A stretch of 64,000 bases of DNA from Paragordius varius (lineage: Eukaryota; Animalia; Nematomorpha). Under the pieces are notes generated by a model. The model was not told the origin of the DNA and ran no database searches. It saw only the letters and a list, made by a program, of their open reading frames with translations. The translations under genes and the position numbers were made by a program. The stretch spans positions 8,370,001 to 8,434,000 of the forward strand of contig OZ176052.1 in the NCBI GenBank assembly GCA_964247055.1, given 5' to 3'. Positions 3,011-56,960 of the stretch are shown piece by piece. The stretch's first letter is position 1. Each line of letters opens with the position of its first letter.

Positions 3011-4689
3011 AAAAATGCCGAGAACTTTTTTTGATGTCATCTAGCATTAAAAATTGTTATCCCAATCTTATATTAATGCATGTGTTCTTACCTAACTATC
3101 TTAGAGGGTCAAAATATGATACTTTCCTACATTCGAAAATTAAAATAACCTATAAATACTTTTTTGCTTTTTTATTGTAGTGTATGATTTATGATATTTT
3201 CAGGACCAAAGTTAACTTTCCCCATAAAAATTTATTAAGCATAATGTACAGTTACGATTTATTGATATAAACAAACTAATTACAAAAATGATATTTTTTC
3301 AAAATTCCGATTTTTTAAAAAGTGTAAAATAAAAGTATTAATTAACTTTCAACAATTTTCAGGCAAAAAATTTCTATAGACATGACATCTCATATATGTT
3401 GCGTCATGGTAAAAGCGTAATAGCTTGTGGGATGGGTAGAGAGCGTGAACTGGAACACTTGCCAACACGTATTGAACCATATTTTTTAAATTTGGCCATA
3501 GCTTATCCCTTAGTTTGACCTTAACTTTAGACTCAAATCTGACAAAGTGCGGTAATGGCTCTGAAAACATTTATCTTAACCACATAACAGTAAATTTAGT
3601 AATGAATAGATATGCATGGTGGGTCAAAAGCCTAGTTGAATTCTATATTTAAGGAAAGGTATGACCAACTATAAAATCCGAATAATACTGGAGCTATATT
3701 GCATTTGAAAAGATAACTGATATCTGAACTTTAAAGAAATTTTTAAATCGAATTTATTTATGGAAGAAATATCTGAAAAGTTGCAAATAAACAGTTAGTT
3801 AAATGCATGTTTATATGATTATCGTTTATATAGCATCGATAAATTTAAAATAAAGTTTTATTTCGGTTTTACGTAATATATATATTACAAATTAGGTATA
3901 CGTGTATTAATTGACCATAAAAAATTAACTCACTCATAGCTCCACCTCAAGAGATAAGTCTCTCATAATCAATGAGGAATGCCTTATAAGTATATATGAC
4001 CCTTAAATTAAAGTATAAATTATGATTTATGTCAAAATGCATTTTCGAGTCGAGAAAAAAATTGCAAGTAGTTGTAAATTAATTTTTAATGCATCGATTT
4101 TGATATCATTAAAACATTTAAGTAAATAAAAATATTATTACGTTTTCATTCAAGTTCATGCATTAATGAAAAAATATTTTATACTTAAAAACTTGGCTCC
4201 TCTAATCTTGGGGTGATAACCCTAACCTTCCCCTATTACTCTATTAATGTGGTTCAATATATTCTCCAAAAATATTCAGAGCGTTTTCGGCCCGGTCTCC
4301 TTTATAGGGGACCAAAAATGAAAGGATGGACAACGATCTACTGTATTATAAGAGATACAATACCATAATTCCTCCCTCTCTATGGAGGTAAATATAATTA
4401 AAATGACAACATTTCATTAACATAAAAAGGAATATCTAAAAAACAAATCATATGTTCATAATTTTATTGATGTTTCAAGTAGAAGGGATCACTCATTTTA
4501 AAATATTTTTGGTGGAAAATTGAAATTGTTACATGGCACACACTCCAAATTTTCAAATCTAAAAAGGTAAGAGAGTCATATAATAGTTCACTATTAGGTA
4601 ATACTATTTTTACGACATCATTTATTTGGATAGGATGCATGAAAAGTAGATTAATGCCATAAATCATTGTATGTAGGGAAGGGTCAGGA

Positions 4690-6290
4690 CTCCAGATTCG
4701 GAGTTTTGTGGCCACAAGTAATTCCCGCCATAACTTACGATCTTTACATTGTTTTGTTGTAAGGCTACATTGATTCAAGTCCATTTTTATTGTATCATTA
4801 TAAGAAAAGAGTGGTCGTCTCTTTTTTCTTTTGCCATCAACATTCATGTTTTCAAAAGTTTTTGAAGGGTGGGTGGCGTTTCTTCCATGAGTATGACCGT
4901 AGAGACGCAATCTATTAGTTTGGATGAAATAATCGATTTTATCGGTAATAAAAGATGGTATTTCTGATGTGCGAAAGCAGCTTTTGAATATTCGGCTCTT
5001 ACTAGTTATTTGATTAGTTTTGTTTAATGCCCAAGTTTCAGAACCATAGGTAAGAGCTGGTCTTATTCCTGCATTGTAAAGATACCATTTATTATTATTG
5101 TTAACGTTTTTGTTTTGTAAAAAATATTTTAACTGATTATATTTTATACAACCTTGTTGTATTCTTCTTTTAATAGCCTTTTGTAGGCTGCCCTGAGATG
5201 ATATGATATCTCCTAGGTAAACAAAAGAATCTACCAATTCGACATTATGACCGTCAATGTTAAATAAATTTATCGGATGAGAATTATTATTACTGGGGTT
5301 TAAACAATTTAAACATGTAAAATTTATTGCATTTGTTAACTTGTCCTTTACTTTGTGTACACACATTTAACATGATATGCTTTTAATTCGAACGTACTTC
5401 TTTCCTGCAAATGGAGCAGGGATATCTGGGTGTTTCACTTTAACTATTCATCATATTGTTTTTTCCGGGTTTATAACCATTCCATATTGCTCTAGGCATT
5501 TTTTCCACTTAGTAAGATTATTTACAAGTTAATCCGATGATCGCGTCGTTATAACGAGGTCGTCGGCGAATAACATTTCCCAAGGGTATAGGTTCTTATA
5601 TCTTGTTGCCGCATCTATTATAGTAATGAAGGGAGTAGGCTTAGGACTGAACCTTGATGCAGTCCAGCGTTGGTTGGGAAGTTGCTTGTATTGCCGATAT
5701 TGGTTCTAGTGTTGGTTGTTGTAAATTTATAAAGTAGTAATATGATTTGTATAGTATGTTCCTCTATTCCGTTTTTACGCAGTGCCCATTGAATTGTGGA
5801 ACGTGGTATTTGATCAAACGCACGTTCCAGATCTACAAAGACATGGTATAGCTTTTGTTTCTTTTACAGATACTTTTCTAATAAGCTGAGCACAAACAAG
5901 GGATCTATTGTGCTACTGTTTGGACGAAATGCAAACTGATTCGAATCAATGTTTATATGTTTTCTAAACCTGTTTTCTAATATAATTTCTAATAATTTAA
6001 GTGTATGTTCCGGCAGTTTCAGAGGTCTGTAGGACGATGTTTTTAGTCGATCGCCTTTATTTTTATAAATGTTATGATGTTCTTTTAATCGCTGAAAGTT
6101 TGGTTTGTAATTATTATTTGGTTAAAGAGTTTGGTCAGATACTCTGCAGTATCTTTGATGGATCGGATGAGGTCGACTGAAAGGCTGCTTGGACCTGGAG
6201 CTTTGTTGTTTTTTAATTTTTTGATTGTAGTTGTGACTTCATCTATGGTGATTTCTTGTATGGGACACTGGTGTAACCGTGCTAATTGGT
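4690..6290 (-). mobile_element. 5'-truncated, decayed RTE-clade non-LTR retrotransposon (reverse transcriptase and C-terminal region)
   Basis: Minus-strand translation gives KKLKNNKAPGP, YRPLKL, QFAFRP, VFVDLERAFDQIPR, GLHQGSVLS, LFADD (5559-5570), VDSFVYLGD, IRPALTYGSETW and RLRLYGH. It contains several stops and frameshifts. Confidence 0.92.
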
Positions 6291-15306: not shown

Positions 15307-17940
15307 ATGGTTTCTGGCCAATATAACATGTCCCCGGTTGTAAAACTATCCCGTCATAGAGAACGAAAATGTCTTAAGATCTTATTTGCTATTTGCTTAG
15401 TTTTTCTTATCTATGGAACTTATTGGATAATAAGTAGCAGCCGATGTTCTTCTTTTGCATCAAGGGTAAATTTTATTTTTAAATAAAGTTTAATCCCAAA
15501 TGCAATCCTATATCACAGAACCAAAGTAGTAGTCAAACAATGCATATAGAAGTTTATTATGAGGTCCTATGTCCAGATAGTATCAATTTTATCACAAAAC
15601 AACTTTTCCCATTTGCAATGAAACTTAGGGAAGAAAACGAGGCGATTCAAAAAATATTTAAAATAGATCTCTATGCTTTTGGGAAGGCTCAAGTTTGAAA
15701 TCATTTGATAAATATAGGAAATTGGAACCGGAGAAAATTCTACCTTTACTTGCCAGCACGGGATAGATGAATGCATAGGGAATATGTGGCATGTTAATTT
15801 TAAATATATTTATATATAGTCTTGTGCATGGAATCACAATTTTTCAGAATCTAAAGCCGATCCCATATATTTTGTTGGATGCACCATGTCCAAAAATGAT
15901 ATATTTGGTAGTTTTTCTGAGGTACTTATTTATTAAAAAATTTTCAATATTAATATTACAACTGACTCTATTCTAACGATTTATAACTAAGATAAAACTC
16001 GTTTTGTAACGTTTAAAAAATTAATTTATTATATTAATTTTAAAGTATATTTTCCATTTACCCAAAAAATGATTTTGCTGTCTATATGTTTATTTTGGCG
16101 GCTAAATATTTGAAAAATAAATTTTTTTAAATGTAAAAAAAGGAATAATAAACTATCGAAATGTATTTTTTGTTAATACTTAAGAACCGGAATGATTTTG
16201 TGAAATCGTTTTTTAATTAACTATTCAGTGTACGGCACATTATGGGAATTAAAAATCGCACTGAGCAGGCGAGTGTTAAAGCCTTCACATGTCCAGGTAC
16301 AATTTAAGTCACCCTTTAATATAAAAGGAAAAAAGAGACTCTAAACTCTATATTATTATTATTATTAAAAATCAATTAATAAGATATAAAAATCATTGCC
16401 GACAAAATTATTAATTATTTAAATTTTTTCAATTAAAAATTGATACTATATAAAATTTTGGCCACACAAGTTTTTAAAATGAAATTAGTTGGTTTCTACC
16501 GTTAAAAATATTTTTACGTTTGGTCAAAGATTACTAGTAATCGAAAATTCATGTAATAAATTCTATAAGCCATATTAACAATTTAAATATCATTTGTATG
16601 AGTATTATAAAATGATATTATAAAGCCATGATAAAAAAAATGTGTCTCTCTCCACTTATATGCATTAACTATGATTTTGCCCGCTTTTGAAAAATCATGT
16701 CCATATTTTTAAATAATATTTATAACGGTATATTATAAAAGTAAAAAATTGATACTGATTTTATGTAAAACTATATAGAATTAGAATTTTTCATATTTTT
16801 TTCAAAATTGTTATGAAAATAATACCACTGCTAAATACAGGGGTGTCCAACGCAAATGGATTCGCGGGCGCATTTTTGACTTAAAAACTCCGGCGGTCCA
16901 CATTATTTTACACATAATAATGTGAAATGCAAACACAATATAAAAAATTTTTTAGTTCGTAGCAGATTGGAGACTTATCAGAAAAATTGTGTATAAGTTG
17001 CGAATTATATTTTCCAAATTTTTCGTGGGCCGCATTTTGATTAGTTTAAACGTTTTTTATCTGTATATAACATATATTTTAGTTTTTTTTCAAACTCTAA
17101 TCTTTAATTGTACATATATTGCCAACTCTTATAGTGTGCCATGCATGCAAACATTCCCATGGATGAATTGAAAAAATGCGTAAATGGACCTTCAGGACAT
17201 CAATATATGCATATGAATGCGGTCAAAACTTTAACATTACCTCATAAACTTTATTACGTTCCTTGGATTCGGGTTAATGAGGTTATTTACCGTTTTTTAT
17301 CCTATATGCTTCACGTGTGCTTTAAGTTTTTATTTTATAATTGGTTTATTCGCATATATTGTAGGATGATAGTATGAGTACTCGTCACAACATTGAACAC
17401 GATTTATTAGCCTTTGTTTGTGCAATAAAGGTAAAATTGATTTTAAACCCTAATGTATTATAAGGTTTTATATTTAAAGTATGGTTGAGGTCGAAATTGA
17501 TGTAACCAAAATTATTAATCGTATATAATTTTAACATATATTAATCTCATGATAAAAAATAATTATTAAATTTAACTTATATTTAACATAAACGAATTGC
17601 GAAATTTTTAAATTTATGTTAATATATATAAAAATAGCTTTTTTTAGTAGATAAAAATATATTTTTGAAATTAACTTTTGAAATTTTTCTATTTTCTTTT
17701 TTACATTATATTTTTGCATTTATCATACTACTGGTTTTCATAATTGTATGTATAATCGGTCAGAGAGGTTATTATTTTTAACCGGCAATAACCCAATACC
17801 ATATCTATTGTACAAATTAAATATTCCTTTAAATGAATTTAAAAATATGTTATACGATTTTTAAAATATTTATAATTTTTGTATATCGATACAACCAGAC
17901 ATTCGCTGATATGAAAATGTGCCAAAAACCTAACGTATAA
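15307..17940 (+). CDS. GILT/IFI30-like lysosomal thiol reductase, 7 exons
   Basis: Exons 15307(or 15328)-15465, 15519-15692, 15718-15792, 15820-15921, 17135-17281, 17365-17430 and 17899-17940; the last exon is less certain. The product has a hydrophobic N-terminal segment, then VYYEVLCPDSINFITKQLFP, FGKA, FTCQHGIDECIGNMWHSCA, CVNGPSG, YVPWIRVNE and LLAFVC, which are the GILT family signatures. Confidence 0.88.
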
Positions 17941-18470: not shown

Positions 18471-21449
18471 CAGGGGTGCCTAACAAGCTGGCCGCATGCG
18501 GCCCGACGAAAAATTTTGAAATCCATAATTTACAAAAATATGCTTACAAATTAATAGTAATATTGATATTTCTTAAACAATTTTTTTAAAAAGGTCTATG
18601 TCCGCGACAACTCAAAAAGTGACCGCCTGAAAATATTTTTTTTAAAAAAATTTTATTGATTTTTTTCGGATAGTTGGCTACTTCTGAGCGAATTTAAATT
18701 TAAAATACAAAAAAATACGGTTTAAATTAAAAAAAACGTCTAAGAAAAGGGTGTAAAAAATTATTTTATTAATTATAATTCATATGTTTTGGAGCATTTG
18801 CATTAAAACTTAAAATCAGTCATTTCCCTTGAATATATCAAAACTTTGAGCAAAGCTTATTCATAAATCAGAAGCATAATCGTGAAGTTAGATTTGATTT
18901 GATACACCAAAAGTAGGTTTTTAAAACTTATATTTTAGAATGAGCCAAAAAAAGTTGTACAGATACAAGAAAGATTGGGAGCATGAATACTTTTTTATTA
19001 TGATAAATGAAACATGCACCTGTCTAATATGCAATAGTACTGTTGCTTTGCCCAAAAAGTCAAATATTGAAAGACATTATAGATCTCTGCATCCACATTA
19101 CTCCAAAAACTACCCCTTACAAACTCAAGAACGCAACATTAAAGTAAAGGAATTAAAAGAACAATTATCCGCTTACAAAATAGCATACTTAAATACAACA
19201 AAGACTATAAAAATGCTACGATTGCTTCATTCAAGGTAGCGGAAATACTCATTCGGAACAATAAGCCATTCCAAGATGGTGAAATATTTAAAGAAGCCTT
19301 TATTAGCGCTTGTGATATTTTATTTGAAAATTTTAATAACAAAAATAATATTATGACAGCTATTAAAAGCATAAGCTTATCGAGAAATACCGTTATGCGC
19401 AGGGCTGAAGATATTAGTAATAATCTTGATGAAATTTTACATGAAAATATTAATAACTGTATTTTTTTTCCTTGCAACTCGATGAGTCCACCGATTATGT
19501 TGGAATCGCCCAATTATGCATTTTTATTCGTATGATATTTAGTGATTTATCTGCAAAGGAGGAATTATTAACTATAATACCTCTCCACGAACGAACCAGA
19601 GGGCAGGATATTTTTGATTCTTTTTATAAATTTATCACAGATACGAAACTTCCCATCGTAAAACTCGCATCTATAACTACTGATGGAGCTCCAGCTATGA
19701 TTGGCGTTAACAACGGCTTTATCGCTTTATGTAAAAATCACAGTGCATTTCCCAAGTTCATTGATTACCATTGTATAATCCATAATCAAATTATATGTTC
19801 AAAAGTTTTAAAATACCATCATGTAATGAACCCCTGTTTTAAAATTGTTAACGCCATTCGAACAAAAAGCTTGTCCCGCCGCCAATTTCGAATTTTGTTA
19901 AATGAGTGCGGCGTGGAATATGGAGAACTTTTATTACATACTGATGTAAGGTGGTTGAGTCGTGCCGCATTTTTAATTAGATTTAGGCAAATTTTACCAC
20001 AAATAGAAATTTTTTTAGAGAATTCTAAATTTTCATACCCTGAATTGAAAGATCAAGATTGGCTGCTTGATCTTGCATTTTTATGCGATATCACGGAAAA
20101 ATTGCATAAATTAAACATCCAATTACAAGAAAAGATAAAACAATAATGGATATGATGGGTGCTTTAAAATCTTTTAAGGAAACATTAACAGTAGTAGAAA
20201 CACAATTAAAAAACCGAGATTTAAAACATTTTTTTAATCTGGCAGCGGTGTCTGAAAAAATAGAGAATCTCTCTTATGAAAAATATGCAGATGATATTGG
20301 TCTGCTTATTAATGATTTTGAAAAACGATTTTCATCTATAAATAAACTTGAAGACATCGCTATTTTTTTATCAGGCCCATTTAATAATAATAATAATGTT
20401 GAATATATTGTTCAAAAACTCAGCCACTTTCTTGGTGTACCAAATTTAGCAGAGTTGGAAGAGGAATTAATAAATGTTAAATGCGATATCCATCTAAAAT
20501 CATTAGGATCAGATATATATAAATTTATAAATAAAGATAAATACCCCCATATTTGGAAAACCGCTGCATTATTCAATTCTTTTTTTGGATCAACATATTT
20601 ATGTGAATCGGCTTTTTCAATTATGAATGCTATCAAAACTAAACAGAGTCACAATTAACTAATAAACATTTAGAATCATGTTTGAGAATTGCTTTGACTT
20701 CATTTGAACCTAATTTAGATAAACTTTCTGAATTTTTTCGCAGTCGGGCGTTTTAAATATTTTTTTCTTTATTAAATATGGATGTTTATCGAGTATTTTC
20801 GCTTAGGAAAAAGCCGATTTACTAAAAAATATGTGGATAGAATTAAAACTGATACAATTTTAATGTACTCTTATTTATGTTCAAATTATGGTTCTAAATT
20901 GGAATGCTATTTTTTATTTCTTTTATTTTTTGTATCATAATGTATTCTCCCCTGTAATTTCAAATGCATTGTTTAAATTTTCATATTGTAAAATTTCATA
21001 TAATAGAAATTTAATAAATAAATATTTTGAAGTGTTTTATGTTGGTTAAAAAATTAAGGTAGTTAATAACCCGTTGTCTTTTAATTAAAATTATTTTTGT
21101 ATTTGGTTGATAGATAAAAAAATTACAATTTTAAAATGGTTTAAACAAGTCACTCTAATCTGTAAAGCAGGTATATACATCATTTAAAGTGTTGATTGAG
21201 TTTTTTTGATAAATATTTCTGGGTGACCGCGAACTCTTTTTTTAACAAAAAAGCCAAAAAAAAGCTCGCGACAAAAAAAGTGTGGCCACCCCTGGTCTAT
21301 ATAATTAGCAAGAACTAGAAAAAATTATTATATTATGTGTCCCTTTTACAGTCTTATGTTTGAAATCTAATAAATTATTAATGAATGCTCACATATATAT
21401 ATATATATTGAAAATGCGGCCGGGAAGCCATTTTTGTTGGACATCCCTG
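18471..21449. mobile_element. hAT MITE family A copy, split by a transposase-bearing hAT element
   Basis: The outer ends are CAGGGGTGCC (18471) and GGACATCCCTG (21449), with identical flanking CATTAGAC at 18463-18470 and 21450-21457. 18471-~18600 and 21295-21449 match the two halves of the MITE at 11434 in reverse orientation. Confidence 0.75.
18940..20756 (+). pseudogene. hAT transposase, SPIN/Buster (GTF2IRD2-like) group, disrupted by about four frameshifts
   Basis: BED-like finger CLICNSTVALPKKSNIERHYRSLH, followed by LQLDESTD, ITTDGAPAMIG, HCIIH, RWLSR and FGSTYLCESAFS. Frame changes occur near 19200, 19470, 20140 and 20648. The element's right TIR (GTGTGGCCACCCCTG) ends at 21294; its left TIR was not found. 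Confidence 0.9.
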
Positions 21450-35654: not shown

Positions 35655-44558
<8,904 letters not shown>

Positions 44559-52200: not shown

Positions 52201-55200
52201 AAATATAAATAAGGCAAATATAGTTTTTTTATAATATTTCCTAATATTTTCCTTAATAATTATATAATAAATGTAAAAAACATTTTTACTTCTTGGCTTT
52301 CTTGGAAAAGTACATTGTATTCGGCCAGTTGTAAGCCAATAAACCAATCTACAAATTCTTTTCTAAAGAGATTTAAGTATACTTTTATTTAGAAGGTTGA
52401 AACAAATATCATAACATAACATATAACTTGTTTTTTATTTGGAAAAATAATTATAATTAACAAATTACAATATAAAATATTGAAATAAAAACAAACTTAA
52501 AAGAAAATAACTTGGCAAAAAAAATGCAAAGCTTTTACAAATTTTTTGGCAATTCATTGAATACAAACGATATATTGGACCAAAAAGTGTTTGTATAAAA
52601 ATGGCAAATAATTTAAGTATCGAATTCATAAACTACTTTAATGAAGGTTCCATAATATCAATAAGGCGTGCAGCGTTAAAAAAGTCTGTAGATGTAGATA
52701 AAACCTAGTAAAAATAAAAAAATTATTGAATCCAAGTATTATGTTAAACTGATGTTTTAAAAAACAATTAATATCAAATAATTTGCAGTTACATTTAATA
52801 TTACCGGTTGGATAATTAAATAGCAAAAAAATTAACCTAAGGTGCAGTCATAGCATTATTTCGAGAATTTTTTAATAAGTAAATAAATGTCCCCAAATAC
52901 AATTATGCAATATATTTTTACATCCTGTCTAAAATGTAAAATTTTGTTCCGTTAACACGAAACCCTTCCAATTATGAAATAATATATGAAATATTTAGAC
53001 CGCGGATTTAACCTATACCACCATAATTTTAAATTGGTTTAATATATTAAAATTATTATAAAAGAGGTATAAATATGTAAAACAGCATATGAAAATATTT
53101 GAGCATTGTTAATATACCCTTGTATTCGACTGACCTCAAAATGGTCCTCTAACATTTTTATTTTGCCAAAAACCATAAAATATGTATTTACTTTTATCGA
53201 TTTTTAGCGTAAATCTTAATTTGCAATGTTATTATTTATAAAATGAAAATAACATTTTAAAAATCACATTAACCTATTTATTTGGGTGAATGTTATTAGA
53301 TTACCAATACATTAATAAATCTACAGTATTTGTTAAACCATCATAATATTTGTAAAAAATATATATATCAAGAACACATTACGTGTAAATATTGCATTAT
53401 GGCGAACAATTTTTTACTAACAGCGTTCGCAATACTCCTCTATACATTTTAGTGATTCCACTGATTCGATTCGGTTTTTTATGTAAATTTAATATTTATT
53501 CGGTTAAAAAGACATCCAACTTTTCTGATGAAATACCCCCTAAAAACTTATCATCTTGGAAAATACCATTAGATTTAGCATTCTTTTCAAGATATGAAGA
53601 ATATTATACAAAAATTATTATTAGTTGTCAGATGTGAACAAATATTTAAAAAAAGGTGGCCAAAATCTTGTAATAAACATATCTTCCCGATTATTATTTT
53701 ATAATGGATTATAACATTACACCCTAAGCTGGTATCAGCGTTACCTTCCTAAACATTTAATAACCTTTAATCTGCTAAAAGATTCATTTTATATGGTTAT
53801 GCAACCCTAATTTAATCAAAAATATTTTTGTAGTCGTTTCCAAAGATGTAGTTAAAGCAAACAGCAACCTGACGGTTAATAATATTGATTGGATCATTAA
53901 TTTTATAATGCTGAATGTGGGTGTGTTTCATGGCTTCGCGGGCCGCATTGGATCAAAAAATCGGGCGGGCCCATGAAGATATATGGGCATTGCCAAATAT
54001 TTATTAGATTCAGGCGAAAATTGTAAAAACAGCTATTTATTTTAACATTTTTTGCTAGTTCATTAATAAAAACTGGTTATTAAAAATTTTTTTCCACTTT
54101 CTCGCAGGCTGTATAATTATTTTAAAGGGTCGGATGTTGGACACCCCTCGTTTAGCAAATACTGAGTTTATTATCATGATGATTTATAAGGAGTAAACTA
54201 AAAATTGATAATATGTATAATAATTATGCAAATTTAGGCCTGCTTATTCACATTATTTTCGCTCAATTCGAATACATAGTGTGTAGTATAAAACAATTTT
54301 TTTGCATAATTAAATAAACAAAGTAATGTCTGATAGGAAAAATGTTCAATTAACATTGTGTTGCTTTTTTCCATATACGATTGTATTAACAATTGACAAC
54401 TATATTGTGATTAAATCAGCAATATACTCTATATCCCAATAATAGTTTTAAAAAGGTAATTTTTAAGGGCAAATGTTAAACCAAATAAATATGTTCAAAG
54501 ACCAACTTGAAATGAATATGGACCAAGTTGAGGTAAAAAAATATATTAATAAAAAACCCGTGCTCCATGACCTGTCAAAGTGTTTTTAAAATCGGTAAAG
54601 ACTTGCTGTCCCAAATCGTTCCGCATTTTATGTATTCTAAATAATATAAATAAAAAATATACTTATCAGATAGCTCTTTCACATGGGGAATGTTCATACA
54701 GTCTTGAAAACTTTCAATAACGTGTAAAACACCCTGTAAAAGATTGCTTATTTCGCTGTATTTCCGTTGAGGAATCAGTTTTCTAAGCCTTAAAATAATT
54801 TATTTACTCCAAGTTTTCAACCCCTTCAACCAACATATGTAAATTATTTAGGGTAGTAATGGATAAGGTCAAATTGCGTTTAGCAATATCAAGTTGACGA
54901 ATGTCTTGGGTTATTTCATTAACCTGATATTATAAATATCGATATACCATGTTCTCTGATGACTCCGCCCTTTCATTAATTTCCAAAATTCGAGTAGATA
55001 AATCAGATATTTGAGATTTTGTGTTTTGAAGAGTGGATAAAGCCAATTTTTCGTTTTCAATTTGTGTGTGGAGATTTTGTCGGATACTAATATCTAATAA
55101 TCTGAAATAAAAATATTTGTACTTTATATCTTCCTCAAATTTTGTTATAACATCATCAATATTAACTAAAGATTGTTCCGTAGGAAATAATTTGTTTATA

Positions 55201-55336
55201 TATTCCACCTCGTCAAAATCGATTGCATCAAGAGGATCTTCACTCGGAAATATCTATATATTATTTAAAGTACTACTGATTTTATTTCGGCTAATAAATC
55301 GTTGGGTATTTTAAATTCCAATTCGTGATTTTCCAT
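46299..55336 (-). CDS. VPS53: Vacuolar protein sorting 53 (GARP/EARP subunit), 20 exons
   Basis: Exons (minus strand): 55277-55336, 55123-55253, 54948-55101, 54808-54923, 54663-54782, 54558-54636, 52637-52704, 52290-52362, 52038-52180, 50498-50711, 49815-49984, 49503-49607, 49010-49195, 48139-48310, 47756-47865, 47616-47694, 47361-47509, 46918-47127, 46451-46613, 46299-46391. Motifs: [102 protein letters not shown] and [20 protein letters not shown]. Confidence 0.95.
50960..51971. mobile_element. Non-autonomous TIR element (family G) in a VPS53 intron
   Basis: The ends GGGTGATAAAAA...GACTTGACTTGC and GCAAGTCAAGTGCAACTTTTTTATCACCCCACCCTA are inverted repeats. A reverse partial copy lies at ~63635-63750. 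No TSD was seen. Confidence 0.6.
53916..54148. mobile_element. hAT MITE family A copy in a VPS53 intron
   Basis: It contains ATGGCTTCGCGGGCCGCATT and ends GATGTTGGACACCCCT, matching the copy at 11434. Confidence 0.75.
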
Positions 55337-55526
55337 GTGCTCTTCTTAATAAATCAACTGATTTACCATTTAAATTTTTGAAATGTGATATGGGATGGGA
55401 AAAAACCAATTTTACGGTTATTTATTATTTGTTATAACCGCCGCTTTGTTTTTATACATCACCATTAATTATATTATTATGGTAAATAAGATTAATATTT
55501 AGCCCCTAGCATTTTAATTCCTAATA
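55337..55526. promoter_or_regulatory. Putative compact bidirectional promoter (VPS53 / TAPT1)
   Basis: The divergent start codons are 190 bp apart. This is inferred from gene arrangement only. Confidence 0.5.
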
Positions 55527-56960
55527 ATGAACTTCAAAAATTATATTTTCTTACAATTTTTTCCTTCATTTTCTGATCTAAATGTTAATGATGTGAACAG
55601 TGCAAGTAAATGCCAAAAAGTTATATCTCTCCTAAAAATTCCTTTTTACTTTGAAAAGTTTGTAGCTTTTGGTTTTATTTATTGCACAAATTCTTTTTTA
55701 CATTTATACACTTTGTTTATAATACATTTCTTTATCATACATATTGGATTTTTTTACAATTTATTACTACTCACTATTGGTAATCATCGAAAGAAATTAA
55801 CAGCGTCTGAAATATGTATCATAGCAAAAGGGTATTTATTGATTTTCGCTTGTTATTTTTTTAATATGATTGATACTTCAATGGTGTATCACCTAGTCCG
55901 CGGTCAAACTATTATAAAACTTTATATTTTCTTCAACATGTTAGAAGTTGCCGATCGTCTCTGTACTTCTTTGGGTCAGGATATTTTAGAGTCCTTATAT
56001 TGGTCTATATCCCATAATTTAAGTGAAGGCACAAATTTTTTGTCTTGCGCTAAAACATACTTTAACCTCATAGCTTATATGATAGGAACATTATGTTATA
56101 TTATGGTTCATGCACTTATAATATTGTTACAAGTTACAACGCTAAATGTCGCACTTAACTCCCATAATAAAGCATTGTTAACCATTTTGATCTCAAATAA
56201 TTTCGTTGAACTGAAGGGTAACGTCTTCAAAAAATTTGAAGCCAATAATCTATTCCAAGTTGCTTGTAGTGATATTCGGGAACGTTTTAATTACGGGATA
56301 TTTATGATTTTAATTTTGGCCCGAAACGCAACACAACAGCTTGGCACTGATTGGTATGCTTCATCATATCGACTCCTGCCTGATATGGGGATCGTGTTGC
56401 TAGCTGAAATTTTTGTTGATTGGATCAAACATGCATTCATTACTAAGTTCAATGATATAAGCCCTCAAATTTATGAAACTTATATGTTTTATCTTGCACG
56501 AGATTTATTAGCACAACAATGCATAACCCCTGACAAACCAAATATTCAAGATGAGAGTTTATTAAAAAATGACAAAATTATGGCGGGTGATACACAATTA
56601 ATTCCAGCAAATAGGCAAATTCGAGGCGCTTTTCTTCAACAGCGGTATGTTGAACAAAATTTGGAGCTAATATGTAAACAAACTGGTTTTACACCATTAC
56701 CTCTGGCAGTTGTCGTGTTTAAAACATTTTGTCAAACGTTTACCGCCCTAATGACCAGCTATAAGATCGAATATAATGTTATATACCATTATGAAAATAT
56801 TAAATATATCATTACTCAACTAATAGCAAATTTGTACCAATTTTCATATACGTTACAATACATTATATTTGGAATTATAAATGTCTTTATATTTAAATTA
56901 TGGCTAAACATCTTTATTGTTGGAGTGTCATATTTAATATATAACAATAAATGCAAATAA
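55527..56960 (+). CDS. TAPT1: Transmembrane anterior-posterior transformation protein 1 (TAPT1/Emp65 family), single exon, 477 aa
   Basis: An uninterrupted ORF with LKIPFYFEKF, SMVYHLVRGQTIIKLYIFFNMLEVADRL, TLNVALNSHNKALLTILISNNFVELKGNVFKKF, SDIRERF, VDWIKHAFITKFN and GFTPLPLA. Confidence 0.95.
   Translation: MNFKNYIFLQFFPSFSDLNVNDVNSASKCQKVISLLKIPFYFEKFVAFGFIYCTNSFLHLYTLFIIHFFIIHIGFFYNLLLLTIGNHRKKLTASEICIIAKGYLLIFACYFFNMIDTSMVYHLVRGQTIIKLYIFFNMLEVADRLCTSLGQDILESLYWSISHNLSEGTNFLSCAKTYFNLIAYMIGTLCYIMVHALIILLQVTTLNVALNSHNKALLTILISNNFVELKGNVFKKFEANNLFQVACSDIRERFNYGIFMILILARNATQQLGTDWYASSYRLLPDMGIVLLAEIFVDWIKHAFITKFNDISPQIYETYMFYLARDLLAQQCITPDKPNIQDESLLKNDKIMAGDTQLIPANRQIRGAFLQQRYVEQNLELICKQTGFTPLPLAVVVFKTFCQTFTALMTSYKIEYNVIYHYENIKYIITQLIANLYQFSYTLQYIIFGIINVFIFKLWLNIFIVGVSYLIYNNKCK

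Follow-up and report, generated by a model that had tools for sequence, protein, structure and literature searches.

Ciliates, which are unicellular and essentially unimodal in their intron sizes, have tiny spliceosomal introns of approximately 25 nt in the Paramecium type and of 15–16 nt in Stentor. Intron retention in Paramecium is reportedly policed by premature stops, a view put forward by Jaillon and colleagues in 2008. Introns shorter than 30 nt were long believed to be absent from animals. Among 51 animal genomes, such introns have now been described only in the Myxobolidae and in Dicyema japonicum (PMC13644364, 2026). In the myxobolid Myxozoa (Henneguya salminicola, Thelohanellus kitauei, and Myxobolus spp.), GT-AG introns of less than 30 nt, with medians of 22–27 nt, are located at conserved positions between conserved exons and are clustered with other short introns. 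Their splice-site motifs are reduced, with a 'GTa' donor logo, and the short class makes up the bulk of the introns in the compacted genomes of these cnidarians (PMC13644364). Dicyema japonicum is the second animal lineage with comparably short introns, and this parasite is described as having a reduced 'GTa ... AG' signal and a genome-wide shortening (PMC13644364). The same study expects further lineages with such introns and does not mention hairworms. Our search of the literature on introns of hairworms (Nematomorpha), which did not extend to the main genome paper (Cunha et al. 2023), found no relevant report.

In this study, we analyzed a 64,000-nt stretch of the genome of the horsehair worm Paragordius varius (assembly GCA_964247055.1, contig OZ176052.1, positions 8,370,001–8,434,000), hereafter called the window. 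The window is AT-rich (GC content 0.24–0.36 per 2 kb), and its plus strand contains a GILT-like gene at positions 15328–17463, which was modeled with six exons, 244 codons, and a stop codon, all exons being in phase 0. Exon 1 (15328–15465; 46 codons, 138 nt) has an open frame from an ATG to a GTAAAT donor in phase 0. It is predicted to carry the start codon and a hydrophobic signal or anchor segment, an assignment for which homology gives no support. Intron 1 is placed at 15466–15518 (53 nt, GTAAAT...CACAG), and its GC content is 0.23, compared with 0.32–0.36 in the adjoining exons. Exon 2 (15519–15692; 58 codons), translated as ...YYEVLCPDSINF...FGKAQ, includes the start of the GILT domain and CPDS at the active-site position. 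It is followed by a micro-intron of 25 nt (intron 2; 15693–15717, GTTTGA...ATATAG), by exon 3 (15718–15792; 25 codons), whose translation EIGTGENSTFTCQHGIDECIGNMWH includes CQHGIDECIGNMWH as the first part of the GILT signature, and by a second micro-intron of 27 nt (intron 3; 15793–15819, GTTAAT...ATATAG) that is in frame. Both micro-introns have a GTT donor and a TAG acceptor and are in phase 0. Exon 4 (15820–15921; 34 codons), translated as SCAWNHNFSESKADPIYFVGC..., opens with SCAWNH and supplies the last Cys of the signature. The remaining part of the gene consists of intron 4 (15922–17134; 1213 nt, GTACTT...TTATAG), exon 5 (17135–17281; 49 codons), which encodes the C-terminal GILT region and ends with ...YVPWIRVNE, intron 5 (17282–17364; 83 nt, GTT donor), and exon 6 (17365–17463; 32 codons and a TAA stop). 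With introns of 53, 25, 27, 1213, and 83 nt, the gene combines tiny and kilobase introns.

The assignment to the GILT/IFI30 family of lysosomal thiol reductases is based on profile, structure, and word searches that were run exon by exon. Exon 2 matched the Pfam GILT profile (PF03227) at profile positions 1–44 with a score of 35.7 bits, and exon 3 matched it with 24.1 bits, both above the cut-off of 22.4. Because residues 6–25 of exon 3 fall on profile positions 50–69, the exon starts at approximately position 45, directly after exon 2. Exon 4 is too short alone and gave no Pfam score by itself. In a six-frame search of the genome, profile positions 49–95 aligned across the 27-nt segment, which appeared as an insertion with one TAG; therefore, exon 4 continues the GILT domain. 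In the PDB search, exon 5 matched residues 121–162 of the solved GILT structure 6nwx_A (E = 6e-4), with a common ...MH.NA..T..L....YVPW..VNE block that extends to the shared ...YVPW..VNE end, and exon 2 matched residues 11–41 of the same structure weakly. No solved structure matched exon 3 or exon 4 when these were searched singly against the PDB. A word search with the 58 residues of exon 2, in which a length rule bars full-length GILT proteins, found no candidate or transcript-derived fragment. The published GILT signature is CQHGX2ECX2NX4C (PMC8631631). The 27-nt intron interrupts this signature, with NMWH before the intron and SC after it, and only removal of the intron gives the complete CQHG-ID-EC-IG-N-MWHS-C across the exon 3/4 junction. 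The active-site CXXC motif of GILT is replaced by CPDS (CXXS) in exon 2. Therefore, we call the gene GILT-like, and its product may not function as a classical reductase.

A preliminary description of this DNA had proposed that the 25-nt and 27-nt segments are obligatory micro-introns, that each introduces an in-frame stop if retained, and that their removal joins FGKAQ, the exon 3 translation, and SCA with the signature spacing given above. The coordinates, lengths, and letters of both segments agree with the sequence, the exon translations are as proposed, and the spacing is as described. Translation that reads through from exon 2 into the 25-nt intron gives Val and then TGA at the second codon, and translation through the 27-nt intron gives eight codons in frame followed by TAG at the ninth codon, which is the last three bases of the intron itself. 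Because each micro-intron brings a premature stop on retention, either retention truncates the protein. The word 'obligatory' is justified in one sense only, namely that either segment, if retained, brings a premature stop. Both micro-introns have a GT 5′ end and an AG 3′ end, as in U2-type GT-AG introns, and their GC contents are 0.20 and 0.07, respectively, compared with 0.32–0.43 in the adjoining exons. Candidate branch points resembling YTNAY were located by eye at 9 nt (TTGAT) and 7 nt (TTTAT) before the 3′ G, although such motifs are not discriminating in AT-rich sequence.

The intron positions of paralogous genes provide the strongest new evidence for both micro-introns. The comparison covers five GILT copies of one genome: the gene in the window and four further genes on contigs C10 (0.819 Mb), C8 (6.216–6.221 Mb, minus strand), and C7 (1.543 Mb and 1.569 Mb). 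The two copies on C7 form a tandem pair approximately 25 kb apart. At the first micro-intron position, the exon 2 equivalents of all four paralogs end one codon past GK(A/S) and are directly followed by GT, in phase 0. At the second position, the exon 3 equivalents end at the His residue of GNxxH (CAT/GTAA), again in phase 0 and in four of four paralogs. The next exon is located 0.41–3.0 kb away at both positions, which corresponds to introns of approximately 0.4–3 kb. The exons after these long introns begin with ACATNG... in the C10 gene and TCALYG... in the C8 gene, and they align with SCAWNH... of exon 4. Two later intron positions are also common to the family, one located before the opening Cys of exon 5 and the other four residues after VPW(I/V). 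The exon 5 equivalents of the C10 and C8 genes likewise open with Cys directly after AG, and the donor position of intron 5 matches those of the C8 (INE/GTG) and C10 (FDG/GTA) genes. The C8 paralog has an extra intron of approximately 3.5 kb within its exon 2 equivalent. As judged from these alignments, both micro-introns sit at family-wide phase-0 positions, of which the copy in the window has very short versions. Because the five copies follow one shared plan and only one of them has two of its introns in micro form, local shrinkage of single introns is indicated rather than wholesale compaction.

It is very probable, in our view, that the GILT-like gene is intact with its six exons and that the two segments are true U2-type GT-AG introns in it, located at two old phase-0 positions and shrunk to 25 and 27 nt. 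If the gene were instead a decaying pseudogene, the segments would be intron relics or small insertions that now stay in the RNA, and the transcript would be truncated. The presence of CXXS instead of CXXC at the active site could be taken as a sign of such decay, and the four other GILT copies could cover the function. However, CXXS is common to the paralogs, whose active sites read CIDS, CRDS, CPDS, and SLHS, the last one belonging to the second C7 copy, in which the first Cys is lost too. Because the loss of CXXC is common to all paralogs, it is no sign of the decay of this copy. Moreover, an open, in-phase reading frame runs through all six exons, every signature Cys is kept, both segments have exact GT and AG ends at intron positions of the family, and introns of this size are required in many other genes of the genome. 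Decay of the gene is very unlikely in view of these features. An assembly or sequencing artefact, in which spurious short insertions interrupt an intronless stretch, has nothing specific in its favor beyond the fact that some long-read data are prone to errors in AT-rich sequence of low complexity. Random insertions are unlikely to have a GT start and an AG end and to fall on two conserved intron boundaries, and introns in this size range are found again in unrelated genes; we regard this explanation as extremely improbable.

The remaining alternative is that other splice sites are used or that splicing is regulated, with frequent retention and nonsense-mediated decay setting the level of expression. 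Very short introns are spliced inefficiently in some organisms, such as Microsporidia (PMC13644364). Each junction was scanned individually by script for all GT...AG pairs in its vicinity that preserve the frame. The enumeration gave one alternative for the 25-nt intron, a 64-nt intron at 15693–15756, which would be compatible with such a variant. However, its removal would delete the Cys-Gln of CQHG, a region that is present in the corresponding exon of every paralog, and it is without paralog support. For the 27-nt intron, no alternative frame-keeping GT-AG pair was found near the junction. We assign only a slim chance to alternative or regulated splicing.

Micro-introns are not confined to the GILT-like gene. 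Ten further micro-introns of 21–39 nt were read in the genes for PEBP, VPS53, and PLRG1. VPS53 and PLRG1 are located on the minus strand of the window and have micro-introns of 23, 21, 24, 25, and 26 nt and of 22 nt, respectively, all with GTA donors. The PEBP gene, which is located on contig C3 at 10.979 Mb, 2.5 Mb from the window, has micro-introns of 23, 39, 27, and 27 nt, all with GTT donors, and its exons, when joined across the micro-intron junctions, yield intact DPDAP and GLHRY motifs. The preliminary description had presented the GILT-like gene as an independent plus-strand case of the micro-intron class with non-consensus GTT donors. The former holds because the gene is located on the plus strand and VPS53 and PLRG1 are on the minus strand. 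The latter is correct with respect to the general animal consensus but not within this genome, where GTT is frequent. GTT donors were found in 6 of the 12 micro-introns, the other six having GTA, and in 5 of 24 longer introns. These proportions do not differ significantly (two-sided Fisher test, p = 0.12), and the GTT donors are grouped in particular genes, so that GTT is not established as a mark of micro-introns. The 24 longer introns comprise 15 from the GILT family and nine junctions with a unique solution from chaperonin genes (CCT, Pfam Cpn60_TCP1). The chaperonin sample was drawn from nine genes, in which introns were placed with profile coordinates and accepted where a single GT-AG solution preserved the frame. 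It yielded only nine such junctions, six with GTA and three with GTT, one of which has a poor length fit. Outside the micro-introns, GTT donors are present in the 83-nt intron 5 of the GILT-like gene, in an intron of approximately 0.9 kb in the C10 paralog, and in several CCT introns. GTT is an ordinary donor in this genome and is not special to micro-introns.

The lengths of 6 of the 12 micro-introns are divisible by three. Two of these six, the 21-nt VPS53 intron (window positions 55102–55122, minus strand) and the fourth PEBP intron (27 nt), have no in-frame stop, and their retention would add seven and nine residues, respectively, without truncation. Because these two micro-introns lack an in-frame stop, there is no general rule that retention must lead to a stop, although both introns of the GILT-like gene obey it. 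The GILT-like gene resembles Paramecium in that retention of either of its micro-introns would give a premature stop. The micro-introns read here differ in that multiple-of-three lengths are described as depleted in Paramecium, and no sign of depletion is seen here (6/12, a small sample).

We also searched the genome for U1 snRNA genes and found two divergent classes of intact U1 snRNA, with the 5′ ends ACTTACCTG (canonical) and ACTTACTTG (C9U). The copies are located at C6:604678–604842 (minus strand), C6:606254–606419 (plus strand), C3:864188–864352 (plus strand), and C6:3718553–3718717 (minus strand). In the ACTTACTTG class, the first stem is 8 nt shorter, and C9U would pair with an A at the last exon base. 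Pairing of a U1 variant with the T at donor position +3 was considered and dropped because neither intact class is altered opposite +3. Approximately 13 U1 copies in which the first ~20 bases are replaced by AT-rich TTTAATAAATT are located at C6:565–633 kb and C6:3.729–3.734 Mb.

We propose that the ordinary spliceosome would remove both micro-introns through intron definition. It would probably be guided by the GT, the YAG end, an A within the final third, and the strongly AT-biased interior. The T at donor position +3 would be one of the variants that the highly degenerate donor (GTW) of this genome tolerates. Unspliced transcripts would be harmless since each has a premature stop, which may act as a safeguard on splicing failure.

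The two micro-introns share several features with the ultra-short introns of other animals. They are 25 and 27 nt long and are located at conserved exon junctions, and short introns neighbor each other, with those of 53, 25, and 27 nt being consecutive in the 5′ half of this five-intron gene; in contrast to the 'GTa' donor of the described class, both donors are GTT (PMC13644364). While the short class prevails in the compacted genomes of the myxobolids, the hairworm micro-introns stand beside introns of 53, 83, and 1213 nt, and their counterparts in the paralogs are 0.4–3 kb long. In addition, the host is an ecdysozoan rather than a cnidarian, and T is found at position +3 in half of the 12 micro-introns read. 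Dicyema japonicum belongs to another phylum, and the genome-wide shortening described in it (PMC13644364) differs from the situation in the hairworm, in which introns appear to have been shortened one by one within a gene family.

The genome searched comprises 110.6 Mb in 44 contigs. Its mitochondrial genome is contig C44 (15,693 nt), which contains the whole of COX1, including six TGA codons, and many perfect inverted repeats with arms of 31–208 nt and 100% identity. Under the invertebrate mitochondrial code, 16 of 18 checked palindromes are located within long ORFs, among which only the COX1 ORF is named. An array of hairpin units of approximately 52 nt is present at ~6749–7451 of C44, just upstream of COX1. 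Long coding mitochondrial palindromes have been called extraordinary in Nematomorpha, and shorter embedded ones are found in several other organisms (PMC6649704). The coding palindromes of C44 fit this trait, which is strong support for a nematomorph genome rather than proof. An origin from a ciliate or a dicyemid, which intron size and AT content might suggest, is ruled out by the LIM-homeobox, VPS53, and other animal genes of the window and by the mitochondrial palindromes. Other features of the window were also recorded. A single open frame of 480 codons at 55518–56957 (plus strand) matches DUF747 (E = 4e-96), which Pfam lists as a 'eukaryotic membrane protein family', and is arranged head to head with the start of VPS53 at 55336 (minus strand). 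Exons of a LIM-homeobox gene are present at 42452–43889 (plus strand), with the LIM domain at 42452–42742 and the homeodomain end at 43506–43889. Two long open frames at 4467–5366 (minus strand) and 18925–20655 (plus strand), which had no Pfam match at E 0.01, look like putative mobile-element fragments.

The contribution of this locus itself is the comparison of paralogs, and the GILT genes supply matched long and short introns at the same positions for splicing experiments. Horsehair worms probably constitute a third animal lineage, independent of the other two, that has spliceosomal introns of less than 30 nt, with intron-by-intron shrinkage and an unusually permissive donor, in which either A or T follows GT. 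The presence of such introns in a hairworm extends the list beyond myxobolid cnidarians and one dicyemid (PMC13644364). A published hairworm assembly has a GC content of 26.9% and a BUSCO completeness of only 71.6%. Genes such as the GILT-like gene would be broken up by gene finders and BUSCO-type tools whose settings exclude very short introns, and micro-introns may contribute to the figure of 71.6%. If horsehair worms are such a lineage, part of the reported 'gene loss' of the phylum and its low BUSCO completeness could have arisen in annotation, through minimum-intron-length settings.
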